Source of the DNA: Basidiobolus meristosporus CBS 931.73
Taxonomy: Eukaryota; Fungi; Basidiobolomycota
DNA: 64,000 nt
NCBI GenBank assembly: GCA_002104905.1
Contig: MCFE01000053.1
Location: forward strand, 131,721-195,720
Direction: 5' to 3'
The notes beneath the pieces were generated by a model, which searched no databases, had not been told where the DNA came from, and worked only from the letters and a program-made list of their open reading frames with translations. Below, one piece after another: positions 1,045-63,900 of this stretch (position 1 is its first letter; each line of letters starts with the position of its first letter). Both the position numbers and the translations under genes were made by a program.

Positions 1045-2410
1045 CTACTCTTCTGTTTCAGCCTCTTCAGTTTCGCTGCCTTCGTCAATGTCTTCTTGGC
1101 TATTCTTCAGCTCATCAACGTCTGGCAAAATCCCTGAGAGAAGTTCGAGGGCATGCTTATGGTAGTTTCAACTGAACTGAAATCAGATCTGAAAGGTTCC
1201 GGATAGGTTCAGGCTTGATATGGCAACATCGTTAGTGGGGTAACATGATTTTTCAATGAATTTCAAGAACTTACTGAATCTACGACTGTTTTCATTAATA
1301 CCATAGCTTCTTGTACTGCGGTAATAAACTGGTCTTCCGCCTTCTCAGCATCCGCCTTAGCCTAAAGCTATCTGTTATCATCGTAGATCAAAAGATGGAA
1401 TCCAGCCAAATGCCTCTTACTGCTTCTTCTTTCTCAGGTTTTGCATTACGCAGGTTGGTCTTGCACGCGTCCAAATGTAGCCTGGCTGATTGAACATTTC
1501 GACGTGCTTTCTACAATGTGACATATCCTTCAGTATGGGTCGGGGTTTAACATCTCGATAACTCAATTGCTGTCGTACCATTGCTTTTTGAATATTCAGC
1601 TCAAGTGAGGCCTCGAGTGGTCGAATGAACTTCTTGTAGACATCGTCATCCTGCCGGTGCAATGTTGGTTCGCTAGCGATCATACTTGCACGTATTGAAG
1701 AGACATACCATATCCAGTCGTGCTTGACCTATCTGGTCGTGGGCGGTAGCAAACTTTGCCAGTGCAGTGCCTGTGGTTCGACGTGGTGAGCGGGAGACGC
1801 TATTGTACAAAGGATGCTGCAGCCATCATACCTAAAGGTTCCCCGACACCAATGATCTCTGCACTCTGTGCAGAGGCACGGGACAAAGCGTGGCTTAAGG
1901 TCTTGGGTGGCTCTTCAATTTCTTCCAAACCTGCACGGTCTCCAGCGTTCACCAAGGCTACTTGTTTCACTCCAATAGCCAAAGAACGAGTGAAATCAGC
2001 AAAAGAGTCTTGGAGATGATAAGGGTAATCGTATCCTTCGGTAGTGTAAACTCTAGCTACTTTAAGTAAGTTGTTGAACGAAACACGCACGGCATCCACA
2101 CGCTGAAAATAACGATCGTTAGATGACTGCCAAGGAAGAAACGCAGATTTGCGATCGAGAGATGGGATATCCGTAAAGTACTGACTTTCTCCATTTCAAC
2201 GTATTCCTTGGGCAGTTCGGTTACGTCAGTAGCATTCCCAAATTTCTCTTGTGCTAGCTATGTTGAATATCAATGTAATTAAACACAGTGCGATGGAGTG
2301 GTCCAGTTGAGCTATACCTGCTTTGCCTGGCCAAGGCCTTGCTCCAGACTTTGAGCAAACTTTTTGGCAAGTGGATTGAATTTTTGGCTGAAGGAAGAAA
2401 AGGAGTCCAT
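1045..2410 (-). CDS. GVP36: BAR-domain protein, Gvp36-like (multi-exon; apparent +1 frameshift in last exon at 1166-1168)
   Basis: Exons read MDSFSSFSQKFNPLAKKFAQSLEQGLGQAKQ, ..VYTTEGYDYP..KTLSHALSRAS.., KARRNVQSARLHLDACK, AEDQFITAVQEAMVLMKTVVDS|PEPIRNLSDLISVQL. Canonical GT-AG introns. Confidence 0.75.
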
Positions 2411-2780
2411 TGCTTGTTAGAAGAATACAAGATAAGTAGTTATGAGGGTAACTTGTAGAGTATTGGGAGGATTCACGATTATTTATGGCAGTTTTGTAGT
2501 GACGAAATTAGGATATTTTTGGATAGCAAATATTGCGCATAAATTGATCAGTCTACCAAATTGACCAATACTTTAATGCTTTCAAAAGACACACAACCAT
2601 ACATAAGCAATACTAGAGCAAATTCCGAGACCATGTATCTGAAAGTAATAACACCGTTGCACCTTATAGCCTGGTTGAGAACACATTGATACGTAAATAT
2701 ATTCAAAGGACAGGAATTATTTGGATAAATTTAATATATGAACAGTTGTCGTCTCTATAAGTGATCACTGCTCCATAGCG

Positions 2781-4707
<1,927 letters not shown>

Positions 4708-5048
4708 AGAAAAGCTATTTTGAGGTGCAAGTAGCAATTACTAAAGATGAAGTGGTGAAACAAGACTGTCATGTACAAAATTTCAAAGCAAATAAGCAGG
4801 AAATTATCCTAATATGTTTAATCATTATAGTGATCATTTCTTAAGTTGCCAACATGAGTTGTACATGTGATCACAGCATCATATGTTGAATACGGTGATG
4901 TCAATGCCGAGGTTCGTGTTCATTCAAATCAAATATTAATTGTGTATTCCAGCCAGAATTGATGAATAGGAGTAATAGGTTTATTGATAACAGCTACGTA
5001 TTTGTTACAACATACCGTTCATTAGGTAATGTTATGTGAGTTGGGAAT

Positions 5049-7755
5049 TTAATTGCCGAAAAAGCGTTTGTATAGACCACTGATACCACTGTGGTCATTG
5101 GTATCGTATGCAGAACCGCCAGATCCACCACCATTACCGCCAGATCCACCACCGTTACCGCCAGATCCACCGCCATTTCCACCAGAGCCGCCACCATTGC
5201 CAGGGCCATATCCTCCGGCACCACCACCGTTACCACCGGATCCGCCACCATTACCGCCGGCTCCTCCTCCGTTTCCAGTATCATAGCCACCAGCACCTCC
5301 TCCGTTTCCACCGGATCCACCGCCATTTCCACCAGATCCTCCACCGTTTCCTGGACCATAACCACCGGCACCTCCTCCATTACCTCCAGACCCTCCTCCA
5401 TTTCCACCGGATCCTCCACCGTTGCCACCAGATCCACCGCCATTTCCAGTGTCATAGGCTCCAGAACCTCCTCCATTGCCACCAGCACCACCTCCGTTTC
5501 CTGGGCCATATCCTCCGGTTCCACCACCGTTACCGCCGGCACCACCTCCGTTGCCAGTATCGTATCCTCCAGCGCCTCCGCCGTTACCACCGGATCCACC
5601 ACCATTGCCACCAGCACCTCCTCCGTTTCCTGGACCATAACCACCGGCACCGCCACCATTGCCGCCTGATCCTCCACCATTACCACCAGATCCGCCACCG
5701 TTTCCAGTGTCATAGGTTCCAGCCCCTCCTCCGTTTCCGCCGCCATTACCACCAGCTCCTCCTCCATTTCCTGGGCCATAACTACCGGCTCCACCCCCAT
5801 TGCCTCCAGAACCTCCACCGTTTCCGGTATCATACGCACCAGAGCCTCCGCCGTTACCACCGGATCCACCGCCGTTGCCACCAGAGCCTCCTCCGTTTCC
5901 TGGGCCGTAGCCACCGGCTCCTCCTCCATTACCACCAGACCCTCCTCCATTACCACCAGATCCTCCGCCGTTTCCAGTATCGTAGGCTCCACCACCGTTT
6001 CCACCGGATCCACCACCGTTGCCACCAGAGCCTCCTCCGTTTCCTGGGCCATAGCCACCGGCACCACCACCATTGCCTCCGGATCCTCCGCCATTTCCTC
6101 CAGATCCTCCGCCGTTTCCAGTATCGTAGGCTCCACCACCGTTTCCACCGGATCCACCACCGTTGCCACCAGAGCCCCCTCCGTTTCCTGGGCCATAGCC
6201 ACCAGCACCGCCACCGTTGCCTCCTGAGCCTCCTCCATTGCCTCCAGAACCACCACCGTTTCCGGTATCATATGCACCAGAGCCTCCGCCGTTACCACCG
6301 GATCCACCGCCGTTACCACCAGAGCCTCCTCCGTTTCCTGGACCGTAGCCACCGGCGCCACCTCCATTACCTCCAGATCCACCGCCGTTACCACCAGAAC
6401 CACCGCCGTTTCCGGTATCATATGCACCAGCGCCACCTCCATTACCACCAGCACCACCACCGTTGCCGCCGGCTCCCCCTCCATTTCCTGGACCGTATCC
6501 TCCAGCGCCACCGCCATTTCCACCGGATCCGCCACCGTTGCCTCCGGATCCGCCGCCATTTCCGGTGTCGTAGGAACCAGCACCACCACCGTGCACCAGC
6601 TCCTCCATTTCCTGGGCCGTATCCACCGGCACCGCCACCATTACCACCGGATCCTCCACCGTTTCCTGGTCCGTACCCACCGGCACCACCGCCATTGCCT
6701 CCTGATCCACCACCATTGCCACCGGATCCACCACCATTGCCACCGGATCCACCACCGTTTCCGGTATCGTAGGCACCAGCACCAGCACCACCACCGTTTC
6801 CGCCGGATCCTCCTCCATTTCCTGGGCCGTATCCGCCAGCGCCGCCACCATTGCCTCCTGATCCACCACCGTTACCACCGGATCCTCCACCATTTCCAGT
6901 GTCGTAGGCACCAGCACCACCACCGTTTCCGCCGGATCCACCGCCGTTGCCACCAGAGCCTCCTCCATTTCCTGGGCCGTATCCGCCAGCGCCGCCACCA
7001 TTGCCACCTGATCCACCACCGTTTCCAGTGTCGTAGGCACCAGCACCGCCACCGTTTCCGCCGGATCCACCACCGTTGCCACCAGAGCCTCCTCCGTTTC
7101 CTGGGCCGTAGCCACCGGCACCGCCGCCATTGCCACCTGATCCGCCACCATTGCCACCGGCTCCACCACCGTTTCCAGTGTCGTAGGCACCAGCACCGCC
7201 ACCGTTTCCGCCGGATCCACCACCGTTGCCACCAGAGCCTCCTCCGTTTCCTGGGCCGTAGCCACCGGCACCGCCGCCATTGCCACCTGATCCACCACCA
7301 TTGCCACCGGCTCCACCACCGTTTCCAGTGTCGTAGGCACCAGCACCGCCACCGTTTCCGCCGGACCCACCGCCGTTGCCACCAGAGCCTCCTCCGTTTC
7401 CTGGGCCATAACCACCGGCACCACCTCCATTTCCTCCAGATCCACCACCGTTGCCACCGGCACCGCCACCATTTCCTCCGGATCCACCTCCGTTACCAGT
7501 GTCATAACCACCAGCACCACCTCCATTACCGCCGGATCCACCTCCATTTCCACCAGAACCTCCGCCATTTCCTGGGCCATATCCTCCAGCACCTCCTCCG
7601 TTCCCTCCGGACCCGCCTCCGTTACCTGCACCCGAGAGATCGCTGGTATCATAGGCACCAACACCGCTTCCAGCACCATGACCGGACCCAGCTCCCGCAC
7701 TTGCTGAGGTAGCAGCGGAAATTAAAAAGATGAGGGCAGGGGCAGAGAATTTCAT
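5049..7755 (-). CDS. Secreted glycine-rich repetitive (silk/structural-like) protein, ~900 aa; net -2 frameshift at ~6591-6594
   Basis: Signal peptide MKFSAPALIFLISAATSASA, then GGNGGG(S/A) repeats punctuated by AYDT and GYGP. The Gly-rich frame switches from ORF 6442..7806 to ORF 5049..7700 at GGTGCACGGTGG (repeat consensus GGTGGCAACGGTGG). C-terminus is AYDTNDHSGISGLYKRFFGN*. Confidence 0.85.
5100..7640. repeat. Coding tandem array: 21-nt unit (GGNGGGS/A) organised into higher-order AYDT/GYGP blocks
   Basis: Direct reading of the sequence. Third codon positions vary between units. Confidence 0.95.
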
Positions 7756-8642
7756 AGTACTGAAAACGCTTAAATATCTAAAGACTCGAAGGTCTGATAC
7801 ATCCAACTGGGAAGATGGCCGAGCTTATATACCTCGAAGGCAATCTTGCCAAATTATGCCAATGAATCCTAATTGAGGTTCCAATTGAAAAATCGCTGAA
7901 TTTTGGAATAGCGCCCTTAAACTTTGGAATTGTTCCCCTTGACCCCTTAATGTATTTGTTTCGGGATACAATATCAGTGTTTACTGATCTGTTCTCAAAG
8001 CCTTAGTATTGAGCTAAAATAATCATGCACTCATGTGTTCCTTACATTATATTGAAACATTTCTATCCCTTAAACCGAGGGAAATCATCAAATAGTACGA
8101 AGCGAGCAATGTATTGCGAATGCGTTGACATTGATGGAAGATTATTCAGTGTATGGGAGATTGATTTATGGATCTGTAAAGCACATTATTCCCTCAAGTA
8201 TGATCCTACATTCCAAAATAGGGAAATGATTCCATTGGGTTCATGACATTATGATAGAGCATGTGTTGGCACTCAAGACATACATCGGCCCACCTGCATA
8301 ATGGTGCCTTGACTTTAGTGCACCCTTTTACACACTCTAGTTGTATTTCGACCATCTTCTATCTGGATTCCCTAAAAGTTAGTCCACATTCGTATCGTAA
8401 ATATTCCGAATGTAGGAAATTAAATCGGTCATCGAGGATGGTCTATTGCCATAGCCTTTAGCAAACAGCAGCTGGGAATTTGGACATTGCGTTACTGCAA
8501 GTTCAGTGCACCAAGAATTCCCCGGTCGCTATATATCGGCCTTATGCCCACTTCTCCTCAAGTCAAACAACCTCGCTTACCACGAGTACTTCAGCCAATA
8601 CCCCAAGTCTCAAAACCCACAACTCCTGATAAACCGGGCAAC

Positions 8643-9341
8643 ATGCATTTCACTCGTGTCTTCTTGTGCGCTACATTCTCTGCTCTGTTCTACTACGCAG
8701 AGGCCAGCCCGTCAATCACCTCCCCTCTGGGAAGCAATTGGCAAGCAGGAACAACGCAGACAATCACCTGGATTGACAACGGGGACAAGGAAGGGATGCC
8801 CGAGTACTTTGACCTCTACCTGATGGCTGGCAAGATGACAGCTCTCCAGCAGGTGGGTGTGATTGCCACCAACATCACCACCAAGCCAGGTCAGTACAAA
8901 TGGGACATCCCGAAGGAAACACCATCAGGAAAGGACTATGCCATTCGTATTGGTGCGCCACCGAGTGTCTCATACAGTCCATATTTCGAGATCTCCGGAG
9001 GTGCCGGCTCAAGACCCGAAAGTGGCCAAACTACTGGCTACTATGGTACGAGCACACCAAACTCGGACACTTCAGCGGGATATAACCCTGACAAACAGTC
9101 ACCCGCGTCACCCAGCCCCGGCCCGAACGGAAAATCAAGCGAGTCACAGCGCAAGAGTATGGGAAGCAGTGTGGACGCATCGACACTCACCATCCTCACC
9201 ATTGGAGCTTTGGCGATTGGATCAACAGTCTCACATTGTAGAGAATCGATGACAGGCGTAGTAGGATCGAATGACGATTCAATTAGAACGGAAAATGATG
9301 TTAGAGAAACCGCGAACCCATTATTTATTGGTCAGATGTAG
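8643..9341 (+). CDS. Ser/Thr-rich GPI-anchored cell-wall protein (Kre9/KNH N-terminal-like domain), copy 1; 1-nt deletion at ~9221 replaces the hydrophobic end with a hydrophilic extension
   Basis: MHFTRVFLCATFSALFYYAEA signal; domain ITSPLGSNWQAGTTQTITW..GQYKWDIP..GKDYAIRIG..SYSPYFEI. GGATCAAC here versus GGAATCAAC in copy 2. Confidence 0.85.
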   Translation: MHFTRVFLCATFSALFYYAEASPSITSPLGSNWQAGTTQTITWIDNGDKEGMPEYFDLYLMAGKMTALQQVGVIATNITTKPGQYKWDIPKETPSGKDYAIRIGAPPSVSYSPYFEISGGAGSRPESGQTTGYYGTSTPNSDTSAGYNPDKQSPASPSPGPNGKSSESQRKSMGSSVDASTLTILTIGALAIGSTVSHCRESMTGVVGSNDDSIRTENDVRETANPLFIGQM

Positions 9342-9720: not shown

Positions 9721-10320
9721 CTACAATGTGAGACTGTTGATTCCAATCGCCAAAGCTCCAATGGTGAGGATGGTGAGTGTCGATGCGTCCACACTGCTTC
9801 CCATACTCTTGCGCTGTGACTCGCTTGATTTTCCGTTCGGGCCGGGGCTGGGTGACGCGGGTGACTGTTTGTCAGGGTTATATCCCGCTGAAGTGTCCGA
9901 GTTTGGTGTGCTCGTACCATAGTAGCCAGTAGTTTGGCCACTTTCGGGTCTTGAGCCGGCACCTCCGGAGATCTCGAAATATGGACTGTATGAGACACTC
10001 GGTGGCGCACCAATACGAATGGCATAGTCCTTTCCTGATGGTGTTTCCTTCGGGATGTCCCATTTGTACTGACCTGGCTTGGTGGTGATGTTGGTGGCAA
10101 TCACACCCACCTGCTGAAGAGCTGTCATCTTGCCAGCCATCAGGTAGAGGTCAAAGTACTCGGGCATCCCTTCCTTGTCCCCGTTGTCAATCCAGGTGAT
10201 TGTCTGCGTTGTTCCTGCTTGCCAATTGCTTCCCAGAGGGGAGGTGATTGACGGGCTGGCCTCTGCGTAGTAGAACAGAGCAGAGAATGTAGCGCACAAG
10301 AAGACACGAGTGAAATGCAT
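9721..10320 (-). CDS. Ser/Thr-rich GPI-anchored cell-wall protein, copy 2 (intact GPI signal ..TLTILTIGALAIGINSLTL*)
   Basis: Inverted near-identical copy of 8643.., with signal peptide, domain, S/T/P linker and hydrophobic C-terminus. Confidence 0.9.
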   Translation of the reverse strand: MHFTRVFLCATFSALFYYAEASPSITSPLGSNWQAGTTQTITWIDNGDKEGMPEYFDLYLMAGKMTALQQVGVIATNITTKPGQYKWDIPKETPSGKDYAIRIGAPPSVSYSPYFEISGGAGSRPESGQTTGYYGTSTPNSDTSAGYNPDKQSPASPSPGPNGKSSESQRKSMGSSVDASTLTILTIGALAIGINSLTL

Positions 10321-10841
10321 GTTGCCCGGTTTATCAGGAGTTGTAGGTTTTGAGACTTGGGGTATCGGCTGAAGTACTCGTGGTAAGCGAGGTTGTTTGA
10401 CTTGAGGAGAAGTGGGCACAAGGCCGATATATAGCGACCGGGGAATTCTTGGTGCACTGAACTTGCAGTAACATACACTCAAACTCCTTCTCAACGTCAT
10501 CTGCTGCATACCAAGTGGGTAGATGTATTAATATAAAAGTGGAAATTTTGAACTCCACATGCACTCCTCGCCCACCCACCCCCGCACTCTTGGACATTGC
10601 AGCGGAAACTAAAGCTGGGATAACCATTTTTCCCTACTGACGGTAGCTGGGTATAAGTAACTCTACTATCCTTGAATCGTTTTTGAGTAATTTCATGAAT
10701 GCTGGATGGAATTTAACAAACAGTTCGAACTCCCTGGAATCAATAGAGTATTGTATATAGAAATTGTTTATTTCTTAATAACAACCTAACTACACATAAA
10801 TAAGATCTTCTGCCCAATAATTATTTTCTAAATGATAAGAA

Positions 10842-36600: not shown

Positions 36601-37707
36601 TTAATCGAAGGTGATCTTGGTACCGCTGAATTCTCCGACACCACCACGGTTGGAGGAGAATCCACCACGGGAGCCACCGCGACCGCCACGAGCACCACCA
36701 CGGCCTCCGCCACGGCCACCGCGACCACCAAAGCTCTGTCTGCGGTCACCGCCGAAGCTTTGTCTACGGTCACCACCGTCGTTGCTACGGGCAGCGGCGA
36801 AGTCAAGTCTGATGTTACGACCATCAAGATCGCTACCGTTCCATTGCATAGCGGCCTTGGCAGCGTCAATGGAGGCGAATTGAATGTAACCGAAACCCTT
36901 GGGTCTGCCGGTATCTCTGTCAGTAGGAAGTCTGATGGAGAGAACCTCACCGCATTCAGCGAAGGCAGCTCTGATAGAGTCTTCGCTGGAGTTGAAGGAA
37001 AGGTTGCCAATGAAGAGAGTGTCACTGGGCTCGTTGTTCTGGCTCTCGAAAGTTCTTTCGGGCTTCTTGGCGGCGGGCTTACCCTCGGAGAAGTCAACGC
37101 GGATACCACGTCCGTCAATCTCCTTGCCGGAGATCTCCAAAGCGTTCTTGGCACCCTCATGGGTGGCGAATTCGACATAACCGAAACCCTTGGACTTGCC
37201 AGTGGCTCTGTCGGTGATGACACGAACGTCAACGATTTCACCGCACTCCTTCATCTCATCACGAAGCCAGTCATTATCAACGCTCCAAGACAAACCACCA
37301 ACGAAAACGGTAGTGGGGCCTTCCTCGACCTTTTGCTTCTTGGCCTCGGACTCTTCGGATTCCTCAGACTCGTCAGCGGATCTCTTGTTGCTGGACTCCT
37401 CAGCTTCAGCAACCTCCTCAGCAGGAGTGGCCTCGGCCTCGGCTTCAGATTCAGAGGACTCCTCCTTCTCTTCGACGGGGGCAGCGACCTCTTCTTCCTT
37501 GGCCTCCTCCTCGGCTTCAGAATCGGAATCAGCCTTCTTGGACTTCTTCTCCTTCTTTTCCTTCTTCTCCTTCTTTTCTTTCTTCTCCTTCTTCTCCTTC
37601 TTGTCCTTAGGAGTCTTCACCTTCAACTTGTCCTCAGACTTCTCCTTCTTGGGGGTCTTTTCGACCTTGGAGGCCTTGGGGGATTTTTCGGTAACTTTGG
37701 AACCCAT
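36601..37707 (-). CDS. NSR1: Nucleolin-like protein (Nsr1/Gar2): K/E-rich N-terminus, two RRMs, RGG tail
   Basis: TVFVGGLSW..KSKGFGYVEF; TLFIGNLSF..RPKGFGYIQF; RGGRGGGRGGARGG. Confidence 0.95.
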   Translation of the reverse strand: MGSKVTEKSPKASKVEKTPKKEKSEDKLKVKTPKDKKEKKEKKEKKEKKEKKEKKSKKADSDSEAEEEAKEEEVAAPVEEKEESSESEAEAEATPAEEVAEAEESSNKRSADESEESEESEAKKQKVEEGPTTVFVGGLSWSVDNDWLRDEMKECGEIVDVRVITDRATGKSKGFGYVEFATHEGAKNALEISGKEIDGRGIRVDFSEGKPAAKKPERTFESQNNEPSDTLFIGNLSFNSSEDSIRAAFAECGEVLSIRLPTDRDTGRPKGFGYIQFASIDAAKAAMQWNGSDLDGRNIRLDFAAARSNDGGDRRQSFGGDRRQSFGGRGGRGGGRGGARGGRGGSRGGFSSNRGGVGEFSGTKITFD

Positions 37708-56983: not shown

Positions 56984-59900
56984 CTAAATGTTCATACTGA
57001 CTAGTCCTAATTTTGACCTAAGATATTCAAACTTGTCTCTGGCTAATGGTTTGGTAAATATGTCTGCAATCATTTCATCTGTAGGACAGTAAACTAAGCT
57101 AACTAAGTTATTCTCTATAGCTTCACGTATGAAATGATGTCTAATATCTATGTGCTTGGTTCTAGCATGAAAAGTTGGATTTCTACCTAATTGTATACAT
57201 CCTTGATTATCTTGAAATAAAGTAATAGGCGTTTTTTGACATAGGCCTAAATCTGTAAAGAGCTTTCTTAACCACATTGCTTCTTTTGTAGCTTCACAGG
57301 CTGCCATATACTCTGCCTCTGTGGTGGAAAGTGCTACGGTTGGTTGCTTTCTTGAATTCCATGAAATGGCTCCTTTACAGTAAAGAAAGGTGTATCCTGT
57401 GGTGGATCTTCTGTCTTCTAAATTTCGTCCCCAATCAGCATCAGAGTATCCCACAAGATCCTGTTCTGAATCCTTATAAGTGTATCTTAAGCAGATATCA
57501 GCAGTTCCTTTTAGGTATCTAAAAATCCGCTTAACTGCTGCAATATGATCAGATCCATAATTCTGATTATGTTGGCTGACAACTCCCACTGAATATGAGA
57601 TATCTGGACGTGTTCCAAGCATGATATACATCAGACTGCCGACCATAGATTGATAAGGAAAGTCAGGGCTTTCAGATGGCACCAAGCTCTCTTGATTTGG
57701 TTGAGTTTTGACCAAGTTAAGGTTTGTCTCCATTGGGGTAGCTGCCGGTTTACAGTCTTCCATTTGGTACTTCTTTAGTATATCTTGAATATACTTGGAT
57801 TGGCTTAGGGTAATAGTCTGGGTACTTCTGTCTATGGAGAACTTAATCCCTAAGTAGTAACTAAGTTCTCCTAGATCGGACATCTTGAACTCCTTAGATA
57901 GGCTGGATTTAGTCTCTTCCAATGTTTCTAGGTTATTGGCGGCTATAATAAGATCATCCACATATAGAGCTAATAGAACTGGATTTGCTCTATCTGGCTT
58001 ATAGTATATACTATAGTCAGCATTACTCCTTTTGAAACTCAAAGATTCCAAATAAGAATCTATCTTGCAATTCCAGGCTCTCGGTGATTGTTTGAGACCA
58101 TATAGTGACTTTTTAAGCTTGCAGACCAAATGGGGGTTATCTTGGTCAACAAACCCATCAGGCTGGTCCATATACACGTCCTCATCAAGTTCTCCATTCA
58201 AAAATGCAGTTTTTACATCCATTTGATGAATAAAAAACTTATATTTGGCTGCAATAGCCAATATTAATCTGATGGAATTAAACTTGGCTACCGGTGCAAA
58301 GGTCTCAGTATAGTCAAGTCCTTTTGTTTGAGAGTATCCTTTGGCTACAAGTCTTGCTTTGTATCTTTCAATTGTACCATCAGCCTTGTATTTTGTCTTG
58401 AAGACCCATCTGCATCCAATTGATTTTCGGTTGATTGGTAATTTGACTAAGTCCCAAGTTTGATTTTCCATCAGTGCCTGATATTCCTCAGTCATTGCAG
58501 ATCTCCAAAACTTCGTCTGAGGGCTATTTAGGGCCTCTTTTACAGTCTGGGGTTCATCAATATGGACTGAATAGGCATAGGCTAAGTTTGTACCCTCATT
58601 GATATAGTAATTTGGGCTATTTCTTGTCCGATTGGATCTCCGAGCATTTGATACTGGAATGATCACTTCTGGGATATTCCTGGGCACTGATTCTGGCTGA
58701 ACCACGGTTGTAGAGTCCTCTGGAGTGAAAAAATTTTCATTGTTTTGCTCTGATTCAATCCTGACAATTGGTGGACTTGAGATCAAATTTTCGTCATCAT
58801 CTGATGTCATTTTTTGTGAAAATTTTGAATTTTCATCAAACAACACATCCCTGGACTTGATAAGCTTCTTTGCTTCGGTATTGTAGAGTCTGTATGCCTT
58901 ACTCTCATTGCAGTAGCCCAAAAATATGCATTTTACACTTTTTGGCTCAAATTTTGACTGATTTCCGGCCAGTTTTTTGGCATATGCTGTGCACCCAAAT
59001 ATTCTTAGATGTTCTGCACTTGGTCTGTATCCATACCATGCTTCAAATGGAGTAGAATCACGAAGTATTCTGTTATAACTCCTATTTTTAAGGTATACAG
59101 CAGTGGCAACTGATTCCGCCCAAAAATCATAGGATAATTTTTGATCATGGATCATAGATCTTGCCATATCAATTATTGATCTGTTAGCTCGTTCTGCTAC
59201 TCCATTTTGCTGTGGGGAGTATGGTACAGTAGTCTCTTGCTTTATCCCATGAATTTTGCAGAAGTGGATGAAGAGTTTTGAGGTATATTCTCCACCATTG
59301 TCAGAGCGTATTTTCTTGATTTTTTCACCAGTTTCTCTCTCCACCATGGCTTTAAACTCCCTGAGCTTAGACAGAGCTTCTTCCTTTCTCTCCATGAAGT
59401 AGACCCATGTGTATCTTGTATAATCATCAATAAAAGTGATTAAATACTTCATCCCGCCTAAGGATAAATTTTGCATAGGTCCACACAGATCTGAGTGAAT
59501 TAGATCTAATTTTTTCTTAGTTTTGATTAACCCAGAGCTCTTGAACGGTTGTCTGGCTTGTTTCCCATATATGCAGGCTTCACAGTGCTCCAAATTAGCT
59601 GGGGGATCAATTTTCACTCCAGAAATTAGCTGATCTTTGATCATTTTGCGCAAATAATCAAAATTGATGTGTCCAAATCTCCTGTGCCAAAGCATTGGTG
59701 TTTCTTCATTTAAGTTACTTATATTGGCTTCCAGATATGATGGAATATAAGTCAACTTGTATAGGTTCTGATCTCTGATGCCCGAAGCAATATGAGCACC
59801 ATTTTGATCAGTGATCCTGCATCCAGAATTGTCAAAACTGAAACTGAGTCCTTCTGCTGTGGCCTTGCTTACAGAGAGTAGGTTCTTGGCTATTTCTGGT

Positions 59901-60955
59901 ACATAGAGTACTTCTTTAAAGGTCAGTGTATGGCTTCCTTCACTGCTTCTAAGGTTTACTTGGATAGTTCCTTCTCCCACTGCATCAAGTGTTCTATCGT
60001 CACCCATGAAAACCTTCTTAATTGGAATTTCTTGATATTGGGTAAAAAGTTCTTTTTGGTGTGTAAAGTGTTGAGAAGCTCCAGAGTCAATATACCACGT
60101 CTGAGAATCCTTGTTTGTGGTCATATTTAGTGCAGATATGAATAGTCTATCTTCAGTTGTTGCAGCATTTCCATATTCAGGCTTCTTTTGCTGATAATCT
60201 CTCTTTTTGAAACACCGGTCTGATGTGTGTCCTTTCCTTTTGCAGTAGTTGCAAAATAGGTTGCTGTTGCCTTTGTAGGGTCTTGGGTACCTCCTTTGTT
60301 GGTTATCATTGCTTATTAAAGCATTTTCTTCTTCCTTCTTATTGGCGCTTGATTTTCTTAATTCTTCATCCAGGAGCCTTCCATATACGTAATTTAAGGT
60401 CAAATCTTCAGTTCTGGACTCTAGGGCTGATACAAGGCCCTGAAACTCGTCTGTCAGGCTATTCAGGATGGTAACTATCACATCCTCATCAGTAGTTGGT
60501 ACGCCCACAGATTCCATCTCATCTACCAGCAGGGTAATTCTGTTAATTAGATTTTTCATTTCTTCTCCTGGCAGCATCTTTGTAGTAAAGAATTTTCTTC
60601 TCAGATACATTTTCTTGGCAGCTGAACATGACTGGTAGGTGTCTTCTAATGCCTTCCAGGCATTCTTTGCCGTTTTTGCTCTTGAGCATTGAATTAGCAA
60701 TTTGTCCTTGACATTAAGGCAAATGCAGTTAAAGGCACTTTGTTCTTTCTTCTGGTACTTTAAGGCTTCCTCTCCCACGTTTTTAGGAGGGCATTCTTCT
60801 CCCATGACAATATCCCAAAGGCCTCTTTCTTGCAGCAGCATCTTCATCTTCACCTTCCACACTTGGTAGTTAGATCCATCCAACTTTTCAGCAGAGGGAA
60901 AAATTCCAGTAATAGCAGTAGTAGACATTGCAGAGAGTGACAGCTTGGGGCTCAT
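56984..60955 (-). CDS. Copia Gag-Pol polyprotein (Gag zinc knuckle, PR, IN, RT, RNase H), intact
   Basis: CNYCKRKGHTSDRC; WYIDSGASQH; HCEACIYGKQ/HSDLCGP/IRSDNGGEY; LYVDDL; GYSDADW. IN-before-RT order is characteristic of Copia. Confidence 0.97.
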   Translation of the reverse strand: MSPKLSLSAMSTTAITGIFPSAEKLDGSNYQVWKVKMKMLLQERGLWDIVMGEECPPKNVGEEALKYQKKEQSAFNCICLNVKDKLLIQCSRAKTAKNAWKALEDTYQSCSAAKKMYLRRKFFTTKMLPGEEMKNLINRITLLVDEMESVGVPTTDEDVIVTILNSLTDEFQGLVSALESRTEDLTLNYVYGRLLDEELRKSSANKKEEENALISNDNQQRRYPRPYKGNSNLFCNYCKRKGHTSDRCFKKRDYQQKKPEYGNAATTEDRLFISALNMTTNKDSQTWYIDSGASQHFTHQKELFTQYQEIPIKKVFMGDDRTLDAVGEGTIQVNLRSSEGSHTLTFKEVLYVPEIAKNLLSVSKATAEGLSFSFDNSGCRITDQNGAHIASGIRDQNLYKLTYIPSYLEANISNLNEETPMLWHRRFGHINFDYLRKMIKDQLISGVKIDPPANLEHCEACIYGKQARQPFKSSGLIKTKKKLDLIHSDLCGPMQNLSLGGMKYLITFIDDYTRYTWVYFMERKEEALSKLREFKAMVERETGEKIKKIRSDNGGEYTSKLFIHFCKIHGIKQETTVPYSPQQNGVAERANRSIIDMARSMIHDQKLSYDFWAESVATAVYLKNRSYNRILRDSTPFEAWYGYRPSAEHLRIFGCTAYAKKLAGNQSKFEPKSVKCIFLGYCNESKAYRLYNTEAKKLIKSRDVLFDENSKFSQKMTSDDDENLISSPPIVRIESEQNNENFFTPEDSTTVVQPESVPRNIPEVIIPVSNARRSNRTRNSPNYYINEGTNLAYAYSVHIDEPQTVKEALNSPQTKFWRSAMTEEYQALMENQTWDLVKLPINRKSIGCRWVFKTKYKADGTIERYKARLVAKGYSQTKGLDYTETFAPVAKFNSIRLILAIAAKYKFFIHQMDVKTAFLNGELDEDVYMDQPDGFVDQDNPHLVCKLKKSLYGLKQSPRAWNCKIDSYLESLSFKRSNADYSIYYKPDRANPVLLALYVDDLIIAANNLETLEETKSSLSKEFKMSDLGELSYYLGIKFSIDRSTQTITLSQSKYIQDILKKYQMEDCKPAATPMETNLNLVKTQPNQESLVPSESPDFPYQSMVGSLMYIMLGTRPDISYSVGVVSQHNQNYGSDHIAAVKRIFRYLKGTADICLRYTYKDSEQDLVGYSDADWGRNLEDRRSTTGYTFLYCKGAISWNSRKQPTVALSTTEAEYMAACEATKEAMWLRKLFTDLGLCQKTPITLFQDNQGCIQLGRNPTFHARTKHIDIRHHFIREAIENNLVSLVYCPTDEMIADIFTKPLARDKFEYLRSKLGLVSMNI

Positions 60956-60959
60956 AACC
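60948..60959 (-). other. Primer-binding site GGTTATGAGCCC (half-tRNAiMet type), overlapping the gag ATG
   Basis: Directly follows the LTR-terminal CA; complementary to the initiator tRNA anticodon arm GGGCUCAUAACC, as used by copia/Ty5. Confidence 0.85.
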
Positions 60960-63900
60960 TGTTGTAAGAGTCTTGGAGATATTGGAAGTGATTTGGAGAA
61001 CAAGTAGATTATGTGGTTTTCACTTAATGATTTATTGAATGTAAAAGTAGTATTTATACTTTTACATGGTCTTGGCATTACAAACACGTAGAATAGGTTA
61101 AGGAAGGTCCCAAGAACATGTGTGCAAAGTTTGGGGCTGTTTGGACAACTTTGAGAATTTTCATGTTCTGGGTACCTGGTATTTTGGTGAAAATATTCTA
61201 AGTAAATCCCGACAAGGAATTTGGTCAGTATTCTCTAGGATTTGAAGGTGATGATCTAAGTGACTAAGTTAGGTGAATATTTAGGTGGAAAATACGAATT
61301 TTTACAACACTCCCACTCAGCTAAATGTTCATACTGACTAGTCCTAATTTTGACCTAAGATATTCAAACTTGTCTCTAGCTAATGGTTTGGTAAATATGT
61401 CTGCAATCATTTCATCTGTAGGACAGTAAACTAAGCTAACTAAGTTATTCTCTATAGCTTCACGTATGAAATGATGTCTAATATCTATGTGCTTGGTTCT
61501 AGCATGAAAAGTTGGATTTCTACCTAATTGTATACATCCTTGATTATCTTGAAATAAAGTAATAGGCGTTTTTTGACATAGGCCTAAATCTGTAAAGAGC
61601 TTTCTTAACCACATTGCTTCTTTTGTAGCTTCACAGGCTGCCATATACTCTGCCTCTGTAGTAGAAAGTGCTACGGTTGGTTGCTTTCTTGAATTCCATG
61701 AAATGGCTCCTTTACAGTAAAGAAAGGTGTATCCTGTGGTGGATCTTCTGTCTTCTAAATTTCGTCCCCAATCAGCATCAGAGTATCCCACAAGATCCTG
61801 TTCTGAATCCTTATAAGTGTATCTTAAGCAGATATCAGCAGTTCCTTTTAGGTATCTAAAAATCCGCTTAACTGCTGCAATATGATCAGATCCATAATTC
61901 TGATTATGTTGGCTGACAACTCCCACTGAATATGAGATATCTGGACGTGTTCCAAGCATGATATACATCAGACTGCCGACCATAGATTGATAAGGAAAGT
62001 CAGGGCTTTCAGATGGCACCAAGCTCTCTTGATTTGGTTGAGTTTTGACCAAGTTAAGGTTTGTCTCCATTGGGGTAGCTGCCGGTTTACAGTCTTCCAT
62101 TTTGTACTTCTTTAGTATATCTTGAATATACTTGGATTGGCTTAGGGTAATAGTCTGGGTACTTCTGTCTATGGAGAACTTAATCCCTAAGTAGTAACTA
62201 AGTTCTCCTAGATCGGACATCTTGAACTCCTTAGATAGGCTGGATTTAGTCTCTTCCAATGTTTCTAGGTTATTGGCGGCTATAATAAGATCATCCACAT
62301 ATAGAGCTAATAGAACTGGATTTGCTCTATCTGGCTTATAGTATATACTATAGTCAGCATTACTCCTTTTGAAACTCAAAGATTCCAAATAAGAATCTAT
62401 CTTGCAATTCCAGGCTCTCGGTGATTGTTTGAGACCATATAGTGACTTTTTAAGCTTGCAGACCAAATGGGGGTTATCTTGGTCAACAAACCCATCAGGC
62501 TGGTCCATATACACGTCCTCATCAAGTTCTCCATTCAAAAATGCAGTTTTTACATCCATTTGATGAATAAAAAACTTATATTTGGCTGCAATAGCCAATA
62601 TTAATCTGATGGAATTAAACTTGGCTACCGGTGCAAAGGTCTCAGTATAGTCAAGTCCTTTTGTTTGAGAGTATCCTTTGGCTACAAGTCTTGCTTTGTA
62701 TCTTTCAATTGTACCATCAGCCTTGTATTTTGTCTTGAAGACCCATCTGCATCCAATTGATTTTCGGTTGATTGGTAATTTGACTAAGTCCCAAGTTTGA
62801 TTTTCCATCAGGGCCTGATATTCCTCAGTCATTGCAGATCTCCAAAACTTCGTCTGAGGGCTATTTAGGGCCTCTTTTACAGTCTGGGGTTCATCAATAT
62901 GGACTGAATAGGCATAGGCTAAGTTTGTACCCTCATTGATATAGTAATTTGGGCTATTTCTTGTCCGATTGGATCTCCGGGCATTTGATACTGGAATGAT
63001 CACTTCTGGGATATTCCTGGGCACTGATTCTGGCTGAACCACGGTTGTAGAGTCCTCTGGAGTGAAAAAATTTTCATTGTTTTGCTCTGATTCAATCCTG
63101 ACAATTGGTGGACTTGAGATCAAATTTTCGTCATCATCTGATGTCATTTTTTGTGAAAATTTTGAATTTTCATCAAACAACACATCCCTGGACTTGATCA
63201 GCTTCTTTGCTTTGGTATTGTAGAGTCTGTATGCCTTACTCTCATTGCAGTAGCCCAAAAATATGCATTTTACACTTTTTGGCTCAAATTTTGACTGATT
63301 TCCGGCCAGTTTTTTGGCATATGCTGTACACCCAAATATTCTTAGATGTTCTGCACTTGGTCTGTATCCATACCATGCTTCAAATGGAGTAGAATCACGA
63401 AAGTATTCTGTTATAACTCCTATTTTTAAGATATACAGCAGTGGCAACTGATTCCGCCCAAAAATCATAGGATAATTTTTGATCATGGATCATAGATCTT
63501 GCCATATCAATTATTGATCTGTTAGCTCGTTCTGCTACTCCATTTTGCTGTGGGGAGTATGGTACAGTAGTCTCTTGCTTTATCCCATGAATTTTGCAGA
63601 AGTGGATGAAGAGTTTTGAGGTATATTCTCCACCATTGTCAGAGCGTATTTTCTTGATTTTTTCACCAGTTTCTCTCTCCACCATGGCTTTAAACTCCCT
63701 GAACTTAGACAGAGCTTCTTCCTTTCTCTCCATGAAGTAGACCCATGTGTATCTTGTATAATCATCAATAAAAGTGATTAAATACTTCATCCCGCCTAAG
63801 GATAAATTTTGCATAGGTCCACACAGATCTGAGTGAATTAGATCTAATTTTTTCTTAGTTTTGATTAACCCAGAGCTCTTGAACGGTTGTCTGGCTTGTT

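Follow-up and report, generated by a model that had tools for sequence, protein, structure and literature searches.

A candidate secreted Gly/Asn-rich repeat protein with regularly spaced Tyr residues in Basidiobolus meristosporus

Gly-rich, disordered elastomers and glues with spaced Tyr residues are known from animals, such as resilin, silks, eggshell and byssus proteins, and from plants, as glycine-rich proteins (GRPs). Here we describe a Gly/Asn-rich repeat gene in a 64,000-nucleotide (nt) stretch (the window) of contig MCFE01000053.1 (positions 131,721 to 195,720) of the fungus Basidiobolus meristosporus CBS 931.73. The gene occupies the minus strand from 7755 to 5049 of the window, a span of 2707 nt, at the coordinates proposed in an initial annotation that had described a secreted, silk-like product. 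It is a real protein-coding gene for a patterned copolymer, built of Tyr sticker tetrads and Gly/Asn spacer heptads, and this pattern is kept by selection. We put the chances at slightly better than even that the product is a secreted, intrinsically disordered and acidic Basidiobolus protein of ~900 residues, acting as an extracellular matrix component, elastomer or adhesive with Tyr residues as cross-link sites. No published fungal counterpart was found in the literature on glycine-rich proteins of Basidiobolus and the Entomophthorales.

In insect pro-resilin, exon 1 encodes the repeat GGRPSDSYGAPGGGN and the material is held together by dityrosine cross-links (PMC7794388). Like resilin, the Basidiobolus protein is predicted to be secreted and disordered, it is acidic and rich in Gly, each short repeat holds a single Tyr, its Y-G-P-G-N-G-G-G context can be set beside the Y-G-(A)-P-G-G-G-N-like context of resilin, and its Tyr spacing would suit dityrosine cross-linking into an elastomer, as in resilin. 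Unlike resilin, it has a 25/50-amino-acid (aa) repeat rather than one of 13–15 aa, contains 61% Gly with no Arg, Pro or Ser-rich content, is of fungal origin, shows no homology in sequence, and carries no Rebers-Riddiford chitin-binding domain (Pfam Chitin_bind_4; 0 families at E ≤ 1). Class-I glycine-rich wall proteins of plants have an extracellular structural role and consist of a signal peptide followed by (GGX)n repeats, with 60–70% Gly and peroxidase-cross-linked Tyr. With a signal peptide and 61% Gly, the Basidiobolus protein falls within the definition of this class, which is compositional and carries no evidence of homology; it likewise has only Gly-rich repeats with interspersed Tyr after the signal peptide, and no other domain. 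However, it has no Pfam match, including to the plant GRP family, and its Asn-dominated heptad and two-level YDT/YGP alternation are foreign to GRPs, which also belong to another kingdom. The likeness to resilin and plant GRPs appears to be at most convergent, not homologous.

Spider flagelliform and MaSp2 silks are characterised by GPGGX and GGX motifs. The initial annotation had likened the product to silks and plant GRPs, and this likeness, together with that to resilin, holds for composition and regular Tyr spacing alike. GPG- and GGX-type motifs, hierarchical repeats and very long arrays with synonymous diversification are shared with spider silk, whereas the conserved N- and C-terminal domains of spidroins are absent (no Pfam match; the termini are unique segments of 14 and 19 aa), as are poly-Ala blocks, and the Basidiobolus protein is much smaller and Asn-rich. 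Mycobacterial PE_PGRS proteins are built of Gly-Gly-Ala and Gly-Gly-Asn repeats. They resemble the Basidiobolus protein in their Gly/Asn/Ala triplet-rich composition and polymorphic GC-rich repeat DNA (for the background of PE/PPE proteins, see PMC3034920), but the latter lacks a PE domain (Pfam, NCBIfam), has a eukaryotic Sec signal peptide in place of type VII export, contains periodic Tyr and gave no sequence match. Two types of fungal tandem-repeat wall proteins, both Ser/Thr-rich and anchored by glycosylphosphatidylinositol (GPI), are Sclerotinia SsGsr1, with about 14% Gly (PMC10269696), and the Mad1-like adhesins (PMC4797125). These share with our protein a fungal origin, a signal peptide and Gly-containing tandem repeats of variable copy number, and differ from it in that it has no GPI signal, a Gly content of 61% and no adhesin- or collagen-type domain (Pfam).

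Repeat architecture and selection on the reading frame

The gene and its flanking signals are arranged as follows, from upstream to downstream.

7824–7831, minus strand: TATA box TATATAAG, 69–76 nt 5' of the ATG, read directly from the sequence
7696–7755, minus strand: start codon and putative 20-residue signal peptide MKFSAPALIFLISAATSASA, predicted cut between ASA and G
7654–7695, minus strand: short N-terminal non-repeat segment GAGSGHGAGSGVGA, 14 aa
6592–7653, minus strand: first half of the repeat array, frame A, 15 Tyr-headed blocks
6591–6600, minus strand: frame break, shift of one base
5109–6590, minus strand: second half of the repeat array, frame B, 20 Tyr-headed blocks
5052–5108, minus strand: unique C-terminal tail YDTNDHSGISGLYKRFFGN, 19 aa, carrying the sole KR
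5049–5051, minus strand: TAA stop codon
4980–4985, minus strand: AATAAA, polyadenylation-signal-like, 64–69 nt past the stop

The repeat array comprises 36 Tyr-headed blocks, in which YDTG and YGPG alternate strictly and each is followed by two to four NGGG(S/A)GG heptads. Both elements of the pattern seen by the initial annotation were recovered, the alternating block openers, here (A/G)YDT and GYGP, as 18 YDT and 18 YGP blocks, and the GGNGGG(S/A) heptads as 32 copies with Ser and 30 with Ala. The modal block length is 25 aa, and the distance from one Tyr to the next is 25 aa in 20 cases, 18 aa in five and 32 aa in three, so that 80% of the intervals follow a 4 + 7n rule. Pro is confined to YGP (18/18), and 18 of the 20 Asp and 18 of the 20 Thr residues lie within YDT. 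The coding pattern for YGPGNGG has 18 matches, all within the gene, compared to 0.01 expected. At the DNA level, Tandem Repeats Finder reported periods of 21, 75 and 150 nt; the 150-nt unit is present in 11.2 copies with 77% matches.

The copies differ in age along the array. Four YGP blocks in the first half, at 7410, 7260, 7110 and 6981 (spaced by 150, 150 and 129 nt), share 95–100% DNA identity and, judged by this identity, are evidently recent tandem duplications, while the second-half copies are older, with about 80–81% DNA identity. The array is still changing in length, and the duplications at 6981–7410 suggest that isolates probably differ in how many repeats they carry.

All six frames are open over 5.0–7.8 kb, so that the length of an open reading frame (ORF) is no proof of coding here. 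The wrong-frame ORFs found at 4994–7806 on both strands, with lengths of 883, 554, 531 and 373 aa, translate into Val/Glu/Thr-, His/Arg- or Pro-rich nonsense, and ORF-based gene callers can easily pick the wrong frame or strand at such a locus. The 24 canonical 25-aa blocks have mean DNA identities of 81–84% (range 69–100%) and amino-acid identities of 94–96%. Among the YDT blocks, 1065 of the 1137 nucleotide differences fall at the third codon position and none at the second, and the third position holds 584 of the 664 differences among the YGP blocks. Overall, 88–94% of the inter-copy differences lie at third codon positions, a share that is equal in both halves. The 95 heptads behave alike, with third-position shares of 89% for half A and 90% for half B and zero differences at position 2; their position-1 changes represent the tolerated Ser/Ala swap (TCN/GCN). 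In addition, GGG makes up 11 of the 549 Gly codons in the gene (2.0%). Seven other ORFs of the window together use it for 11.7% of theirs (24 of 205), a difference with a Fisher p of 2e-7. The third-position bias of the copy differences and the avoidance of GGG strongly indicate that the Gly/Asn frame is translated and has long been under purifying selection.

It could be argued that there is no gene at all, and that a GC-rich minisatellite happens to be open in every frame, as the six open frames over 5.0–7.8 kb and the failure to find homologues (see below) would allow. Such a minisatellite does not account for the concentration of ~90% of the copy differences at a single codon position in just one frame, for the zero count at position 2 or for the avoidance of GGG codons; moreover, the signal peptide, TATA box, stop codon and AATAAA signal all belong to the frame under selection. 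This explanation is strongly disfavoured, and we give it almost no credence. The signal peptide predicted by the initial annotation, MKFSAPALIFLISAATSASA followed by Gly at 7755–7696, has the classical features of one, namely Lys as the second residue, a hydrophobic core of 13 residues and A-S-A ahead of the predicted cut, with hydropathy values of 1.5–2.2 across the first 10 windows (11-residue windows); the cleavage site was set by eye with the -3/-1 rule. The unique tail is likewise present as described, with YDTNDHSGISGLYKRFFGN directly followed by TAA.

The base composition of this region is also unusual. GC content reaches 55–66% in 5000–7500, the GC skew of the plus strand falls to -0.40 to -0.48, and the minus (sense) strand, full of closely packed GG runs, is extremely rich in G. 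Such a composition might influence how the locus is replicated or transcribed, or how accurately it is sequenced.

The frame break near 6591

The 2707-nt span equals 3n + 1, and the array is divided into frame A (7755–6592, 388 codons), an odd base at 6591 and frame B (6590–5052, 513 codons), with frame A ending in ...GYGPGNGGAGA and frame B starting with GGGAGSYDT.... The initial annotation overlooked this break: the single ORF of ~900 aa that it described is not in the sequence, and a protein of this length exists only if the break near 6591 is an assembly error. Literal reading of the assembled frame, which is a point against an intact product, gives a protein of 437 aa that terminates at a stop at 6442 and consists of 388 native residues and a 49-residue out-of-frame Trp/Arg-rich tail, with a mature isoelectric point (pI) of about 10. 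The out-of-frame tail (6442–6591, minus strand) starts with RWWCWFLRHRKWRR, is strongly basic and is similar in composition to cationic Trp/Arg peptides. It is most likely meaningless.

An intron across the break was considered and rejected, given that repeat codons reach the break from both sides. No GTAAGT, GTATGT or GTGAGT donor occurs anywhere in the gene, and among the GT..AG pairs of 3n + 1 length over the break no more than two carry a weak donor (GTGGGT...CCAG), both of which are ordinary repeat codons. The alternation of blocks fails only at the frame break, where two YGP blocks follow each other, and alignment of the break stretch with the other YGP blocks introduces one 3-nt gap and two 1-nt gaps. 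The break is thus either an assembly consensus error in the repeat or a recent genuine small rearrangement or frameshift.

A genuine frameshift would make the locus a recently inactivated pseudogene, or a gene for a truncated secreted protein of 437 residues. The break is present in the sequence, it coincides with the sole irregularity of the pattern (two successive YGP blocks and a shortened block), which looks more like a rearrangement at this site than like a mere miscall, and no public protein model covers the locus in the correct frame. The absence of stops is uninformative in either direction, since all six frames are open. However, the second half keeps the 90% third-position signature and the GGG avoidance of the first half. 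Such equal signatures imply that any inactivation must be very recent, and the second half appears not to have been decaying for long, as the signature is equally strong past the break. Consensus sequences of the PacBio type are known to retain indels, particularly within repeats. The assembly of B. meristosporus CBS 931.73 is PacBio-based (PMC7466969), which makes an error at the frame break plausible. On this evidence a genuine frameshift is a serious competitor but the less likely option, and an uninterrupted protein of ~900 residues is the preferred reading.

Searches for relatives, protein properties and proposed role

The two halves were searched apart and unjoined. No family was found in a Pfam scan of both halves (E ≤ 1), and there were no matches in NCBIfam or among PDB sequences (E ≤ 10) and no usable match in the ESM Atlas. 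A word-index protein search gave nothing for the second half (region 371–883 of the 883-aa ORF), or for the C-terminal tail (region 840–883, E ≤ 10), among the best 8000 candidates, which were crowded with Gly-rich words, so that both are weak negatives. When the second half was compared exhaustively by phmmer with 1.84 billion representative proteins, two matches with E values of about 5e-5 were returned, which were rejected as relatives because they are unrelated PGDPGYDP-type repeat proteins. In a local phmmer control, one half detected the other with an E value of 7.5e-124 (Z = 5.8e9), demonstrating that the method detects this repeat and that the blank in the 1.84 billion representatives is meaningful. 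Neither the literal ORFs nor the wrong-frame ones have an exact counterpart in the protein collection. A metagenome DNA scan with a two-motif pattern gave 0 matches, and one with a YDTGNGGG pattern yielded single matches at 41 loci, read as chance-level background in view of the lack of a second copy in any of them.

The public protein collections searched therefore contain no correct-frame model of either the gene or a close paralogue. The view of the initial annotation that no named family can be recognised agrees with the blanks in Pfam, NCBIfam, PDB and the 1.84 billion representatives, and the repeat protein seems to belong to no described family, yet it may work like a known kind of molecule. 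Taking the six open frames, the frame break and the missing public model together, genes of this kind are expected to be systematically missed or mis-framed by annotation.

Counted over the two halves together, Gly accounts for 61% of the residues, Asn for 11%, Ser for 8%, Ala for 7% and Tyr for 4%, whereas Cys, Trp, Glu and Gln are absent. The absence of Cys and near-absence of basic residues claimed earlier were borne out by counts of 0 Cys, 2 Lys, 1 Arg and 2 His, and the protein has a calculated pI of about 4.05, a net charge of about -18 and a mature mass of about 66 kDa. Hydropathy analysis revealed no hydrophobic segments in the repeat protein. No N-X-S/T sequon is present in the protein, and no GPI-attachment signal was recognised from the hydropathy of the C-terminal tail, the last 30 residues of which (ending ...SGLYKRFFGN) have 11-residue hydropathy values of ≤0.2. 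Without a GPI signal, Cys or an N-glycosylation sequon, the chain would be free of the usual fungal wall anchors. Kex2-processed repeat precursors, e.g. of the Ustilago Rep1 type, carry KR or RR between the repeat units. No KR or RR separates the units here, the whole protein containing 1 Arg and 2 Lys. A single KR does exist, as pointed out by the initial annotation, but it lies 4 residues from the C-terminus, and its cleavage by Kex2 would release only FFGN.

In a single-sequence AlphaFold2 run of the first half, the mean predicted local distance difference test (pLDDT) score was 33 and no secondary structure was predicted. The repeats might instead fold regularly, as a polyglycine-II helix bundle or sandwich or as a beta-solenoid. 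The polyglycine-II fold is known from the snow-flea antifreeze protein and has been predicted for mycobacterial PE_PGRS domains; the GGN/GGA/GGS composition is like that of PGRS-type repeats, and the 25-aa periodicity is very regular. Against this, the model has a pLDDT of 33 and no structure, a period of 7 residues cannot be divided into whole polyglycine-II repeats of 3 residues, and no PDB sequence was matched at E ≤ 10. A regular fold is accordingly given very little weight compared to a disordered chain.

We propose that the signal peptide would send the disordered chain into the secretory pathway and then be cleaved, the chain being exported. Outside the cell, it would be a naked or O-glycosylated, highly flexible polyanion and may form a hydrated flexible network within the wall or outside it. 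Its design would be one of stickers and spacers, in which acidic YDT and turn-like YGP contexts of Tyr alternate and Gly/Asn/Ser spacers lie between them, the plan that resilin and plant GRPs also follow. The Tyr residues may serve as points of cross-linking or cohesion, via oxidative dityrosine formation (as in resilin and plant GRPs) or non-covalent Tyr contacts, and such a network would yield a material that is elastic or sticky. In this fungus, the material could be located at the adhesive capilliconidial tip, in the wall surrounding the pressurised 'rocket' conidiophore or in the spore walls. The adhesive spore tip of Basidiobolus is used for hitching rides on insects. Rocket discharge and capilliconidia with adhesive tips are features of the Basidiobolaceae, and the pressurised conidiophore ruptures and launches the conidium (PMC13370150). 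The repeat gene would be a concrete candidate for the material of either the adhesive spore tip or the pressurised conidiophore, and the very simple 25-residue design should lend itself to recombinant production as a biomaterial.

Asn is followed by Gly in 100 of 102 cases. Asn-Gly is the sequence most prone to spontaneous deamidation, and under physiological conditions its conversion to Asp/isoAsp takes hours to days (PMC11659308), so that a secreted chain should gain negative charge and isoAsp with age. This raises the alternative of a secreted, disordered, hygroscopic coat (a mucilage or wall hydrogel) that fills space or lubricates, swells via Asn-Gly deamidation, and is not a cross-linked elastomer or glue. 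The lability of its many Asn-Gly sites would suit such a coat, as would an acidic protein without hydrophobic segments. Deamidation may, however, be either used or merely tolerated, and a hydrogel coat leaves the strict 4 + 7n spacing of Tyr in two alternating, conserved contexts unexplained; we consider it improbable. Returning to a network with Tyr cross-link sites, a bolder version is that Basidiobolus independently evolved a resilin-like elastomer or glue for the capilliconidial adhesive droplet or the energy-storing 'rocket' wall, in which the 100 Asn-Gly sites may act as a deamidation timer that alters charge and swelling. If it held, no protein elastomer or bioadhesive of this kind would have been described in fungi before. 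This is a speculative proposal that we consider improbable.

Besides the broken frame, several points weigh against a cross-linkable extracellular material. The argument for a material role is one of compositional analogy throughout, and a low single-sequence pLDDT is weak evidence and no proof of disorder. Furthermore, no relative was found in any protein or metagenome search performed, and no oxidase, peroxidase or laccase gene lies near the locus.

Neighbouring genes and other features of the window

The adjacent gene at 8643–9338 (plus strand) encodes a surface protein with a Kre9/KNH domain (Pfam E value about 2e-16), with relatives in B. ranarum (79–85% identity) and a paralogue in B. 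meristosporus CBS 931.73 (48%). The best named relatives of this adjoining protein are thus Basidiobolus proteins, in keeping with the fungal origin suggested in the initial annotation; on these matches the window falls within Basidiobolus, most probably B. meristosporus. A shorter, 176-aa public model of the same gene lies within the same 90%-identity cluster. A second Kre9/KNH gene at 9724–10509 (minus strand; Pfam E value about 2e-16) is convergent with the first, and the pair lies directly upstream of the Gly/Asn gene. Other neighbours include a fungal transcription factor, a major facilitator superfamily (MFS) transporter and a 2-oxoglutarate (2OG)-oxygenase-like ORF, and an acyl-CoA dehydrogenase, a nucleolin-like protein and two copia-type retroelement ORFs are located farther off.

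The nucleolin/Nsr1-like ORF at 36601–37707 (minus strand) is intronless and has a Lys/Glu/Ser-rich acidic N-terminus, an RNA-binding-domain-like middle and an RGG-rich tail; GGG was found in 0 of its 43 Gly codons. One of the retroelement ORFs is a full-length copia-type long terminal repeat (LTR) retrotransposon polyprotein of 1367 aa at 56984–61087 (minus strand), with gag, integrase and RVT_2, and beside it lies a second, truncated copia-type copy of 721 aa at 61321–63486 (minus strand). Downstream of the Gly/Asn gene, minus-strand ORF pieces at 1400–4400 resemble, by eye, the exons of a LETM1/Mdm38-type mitochondrial protein.

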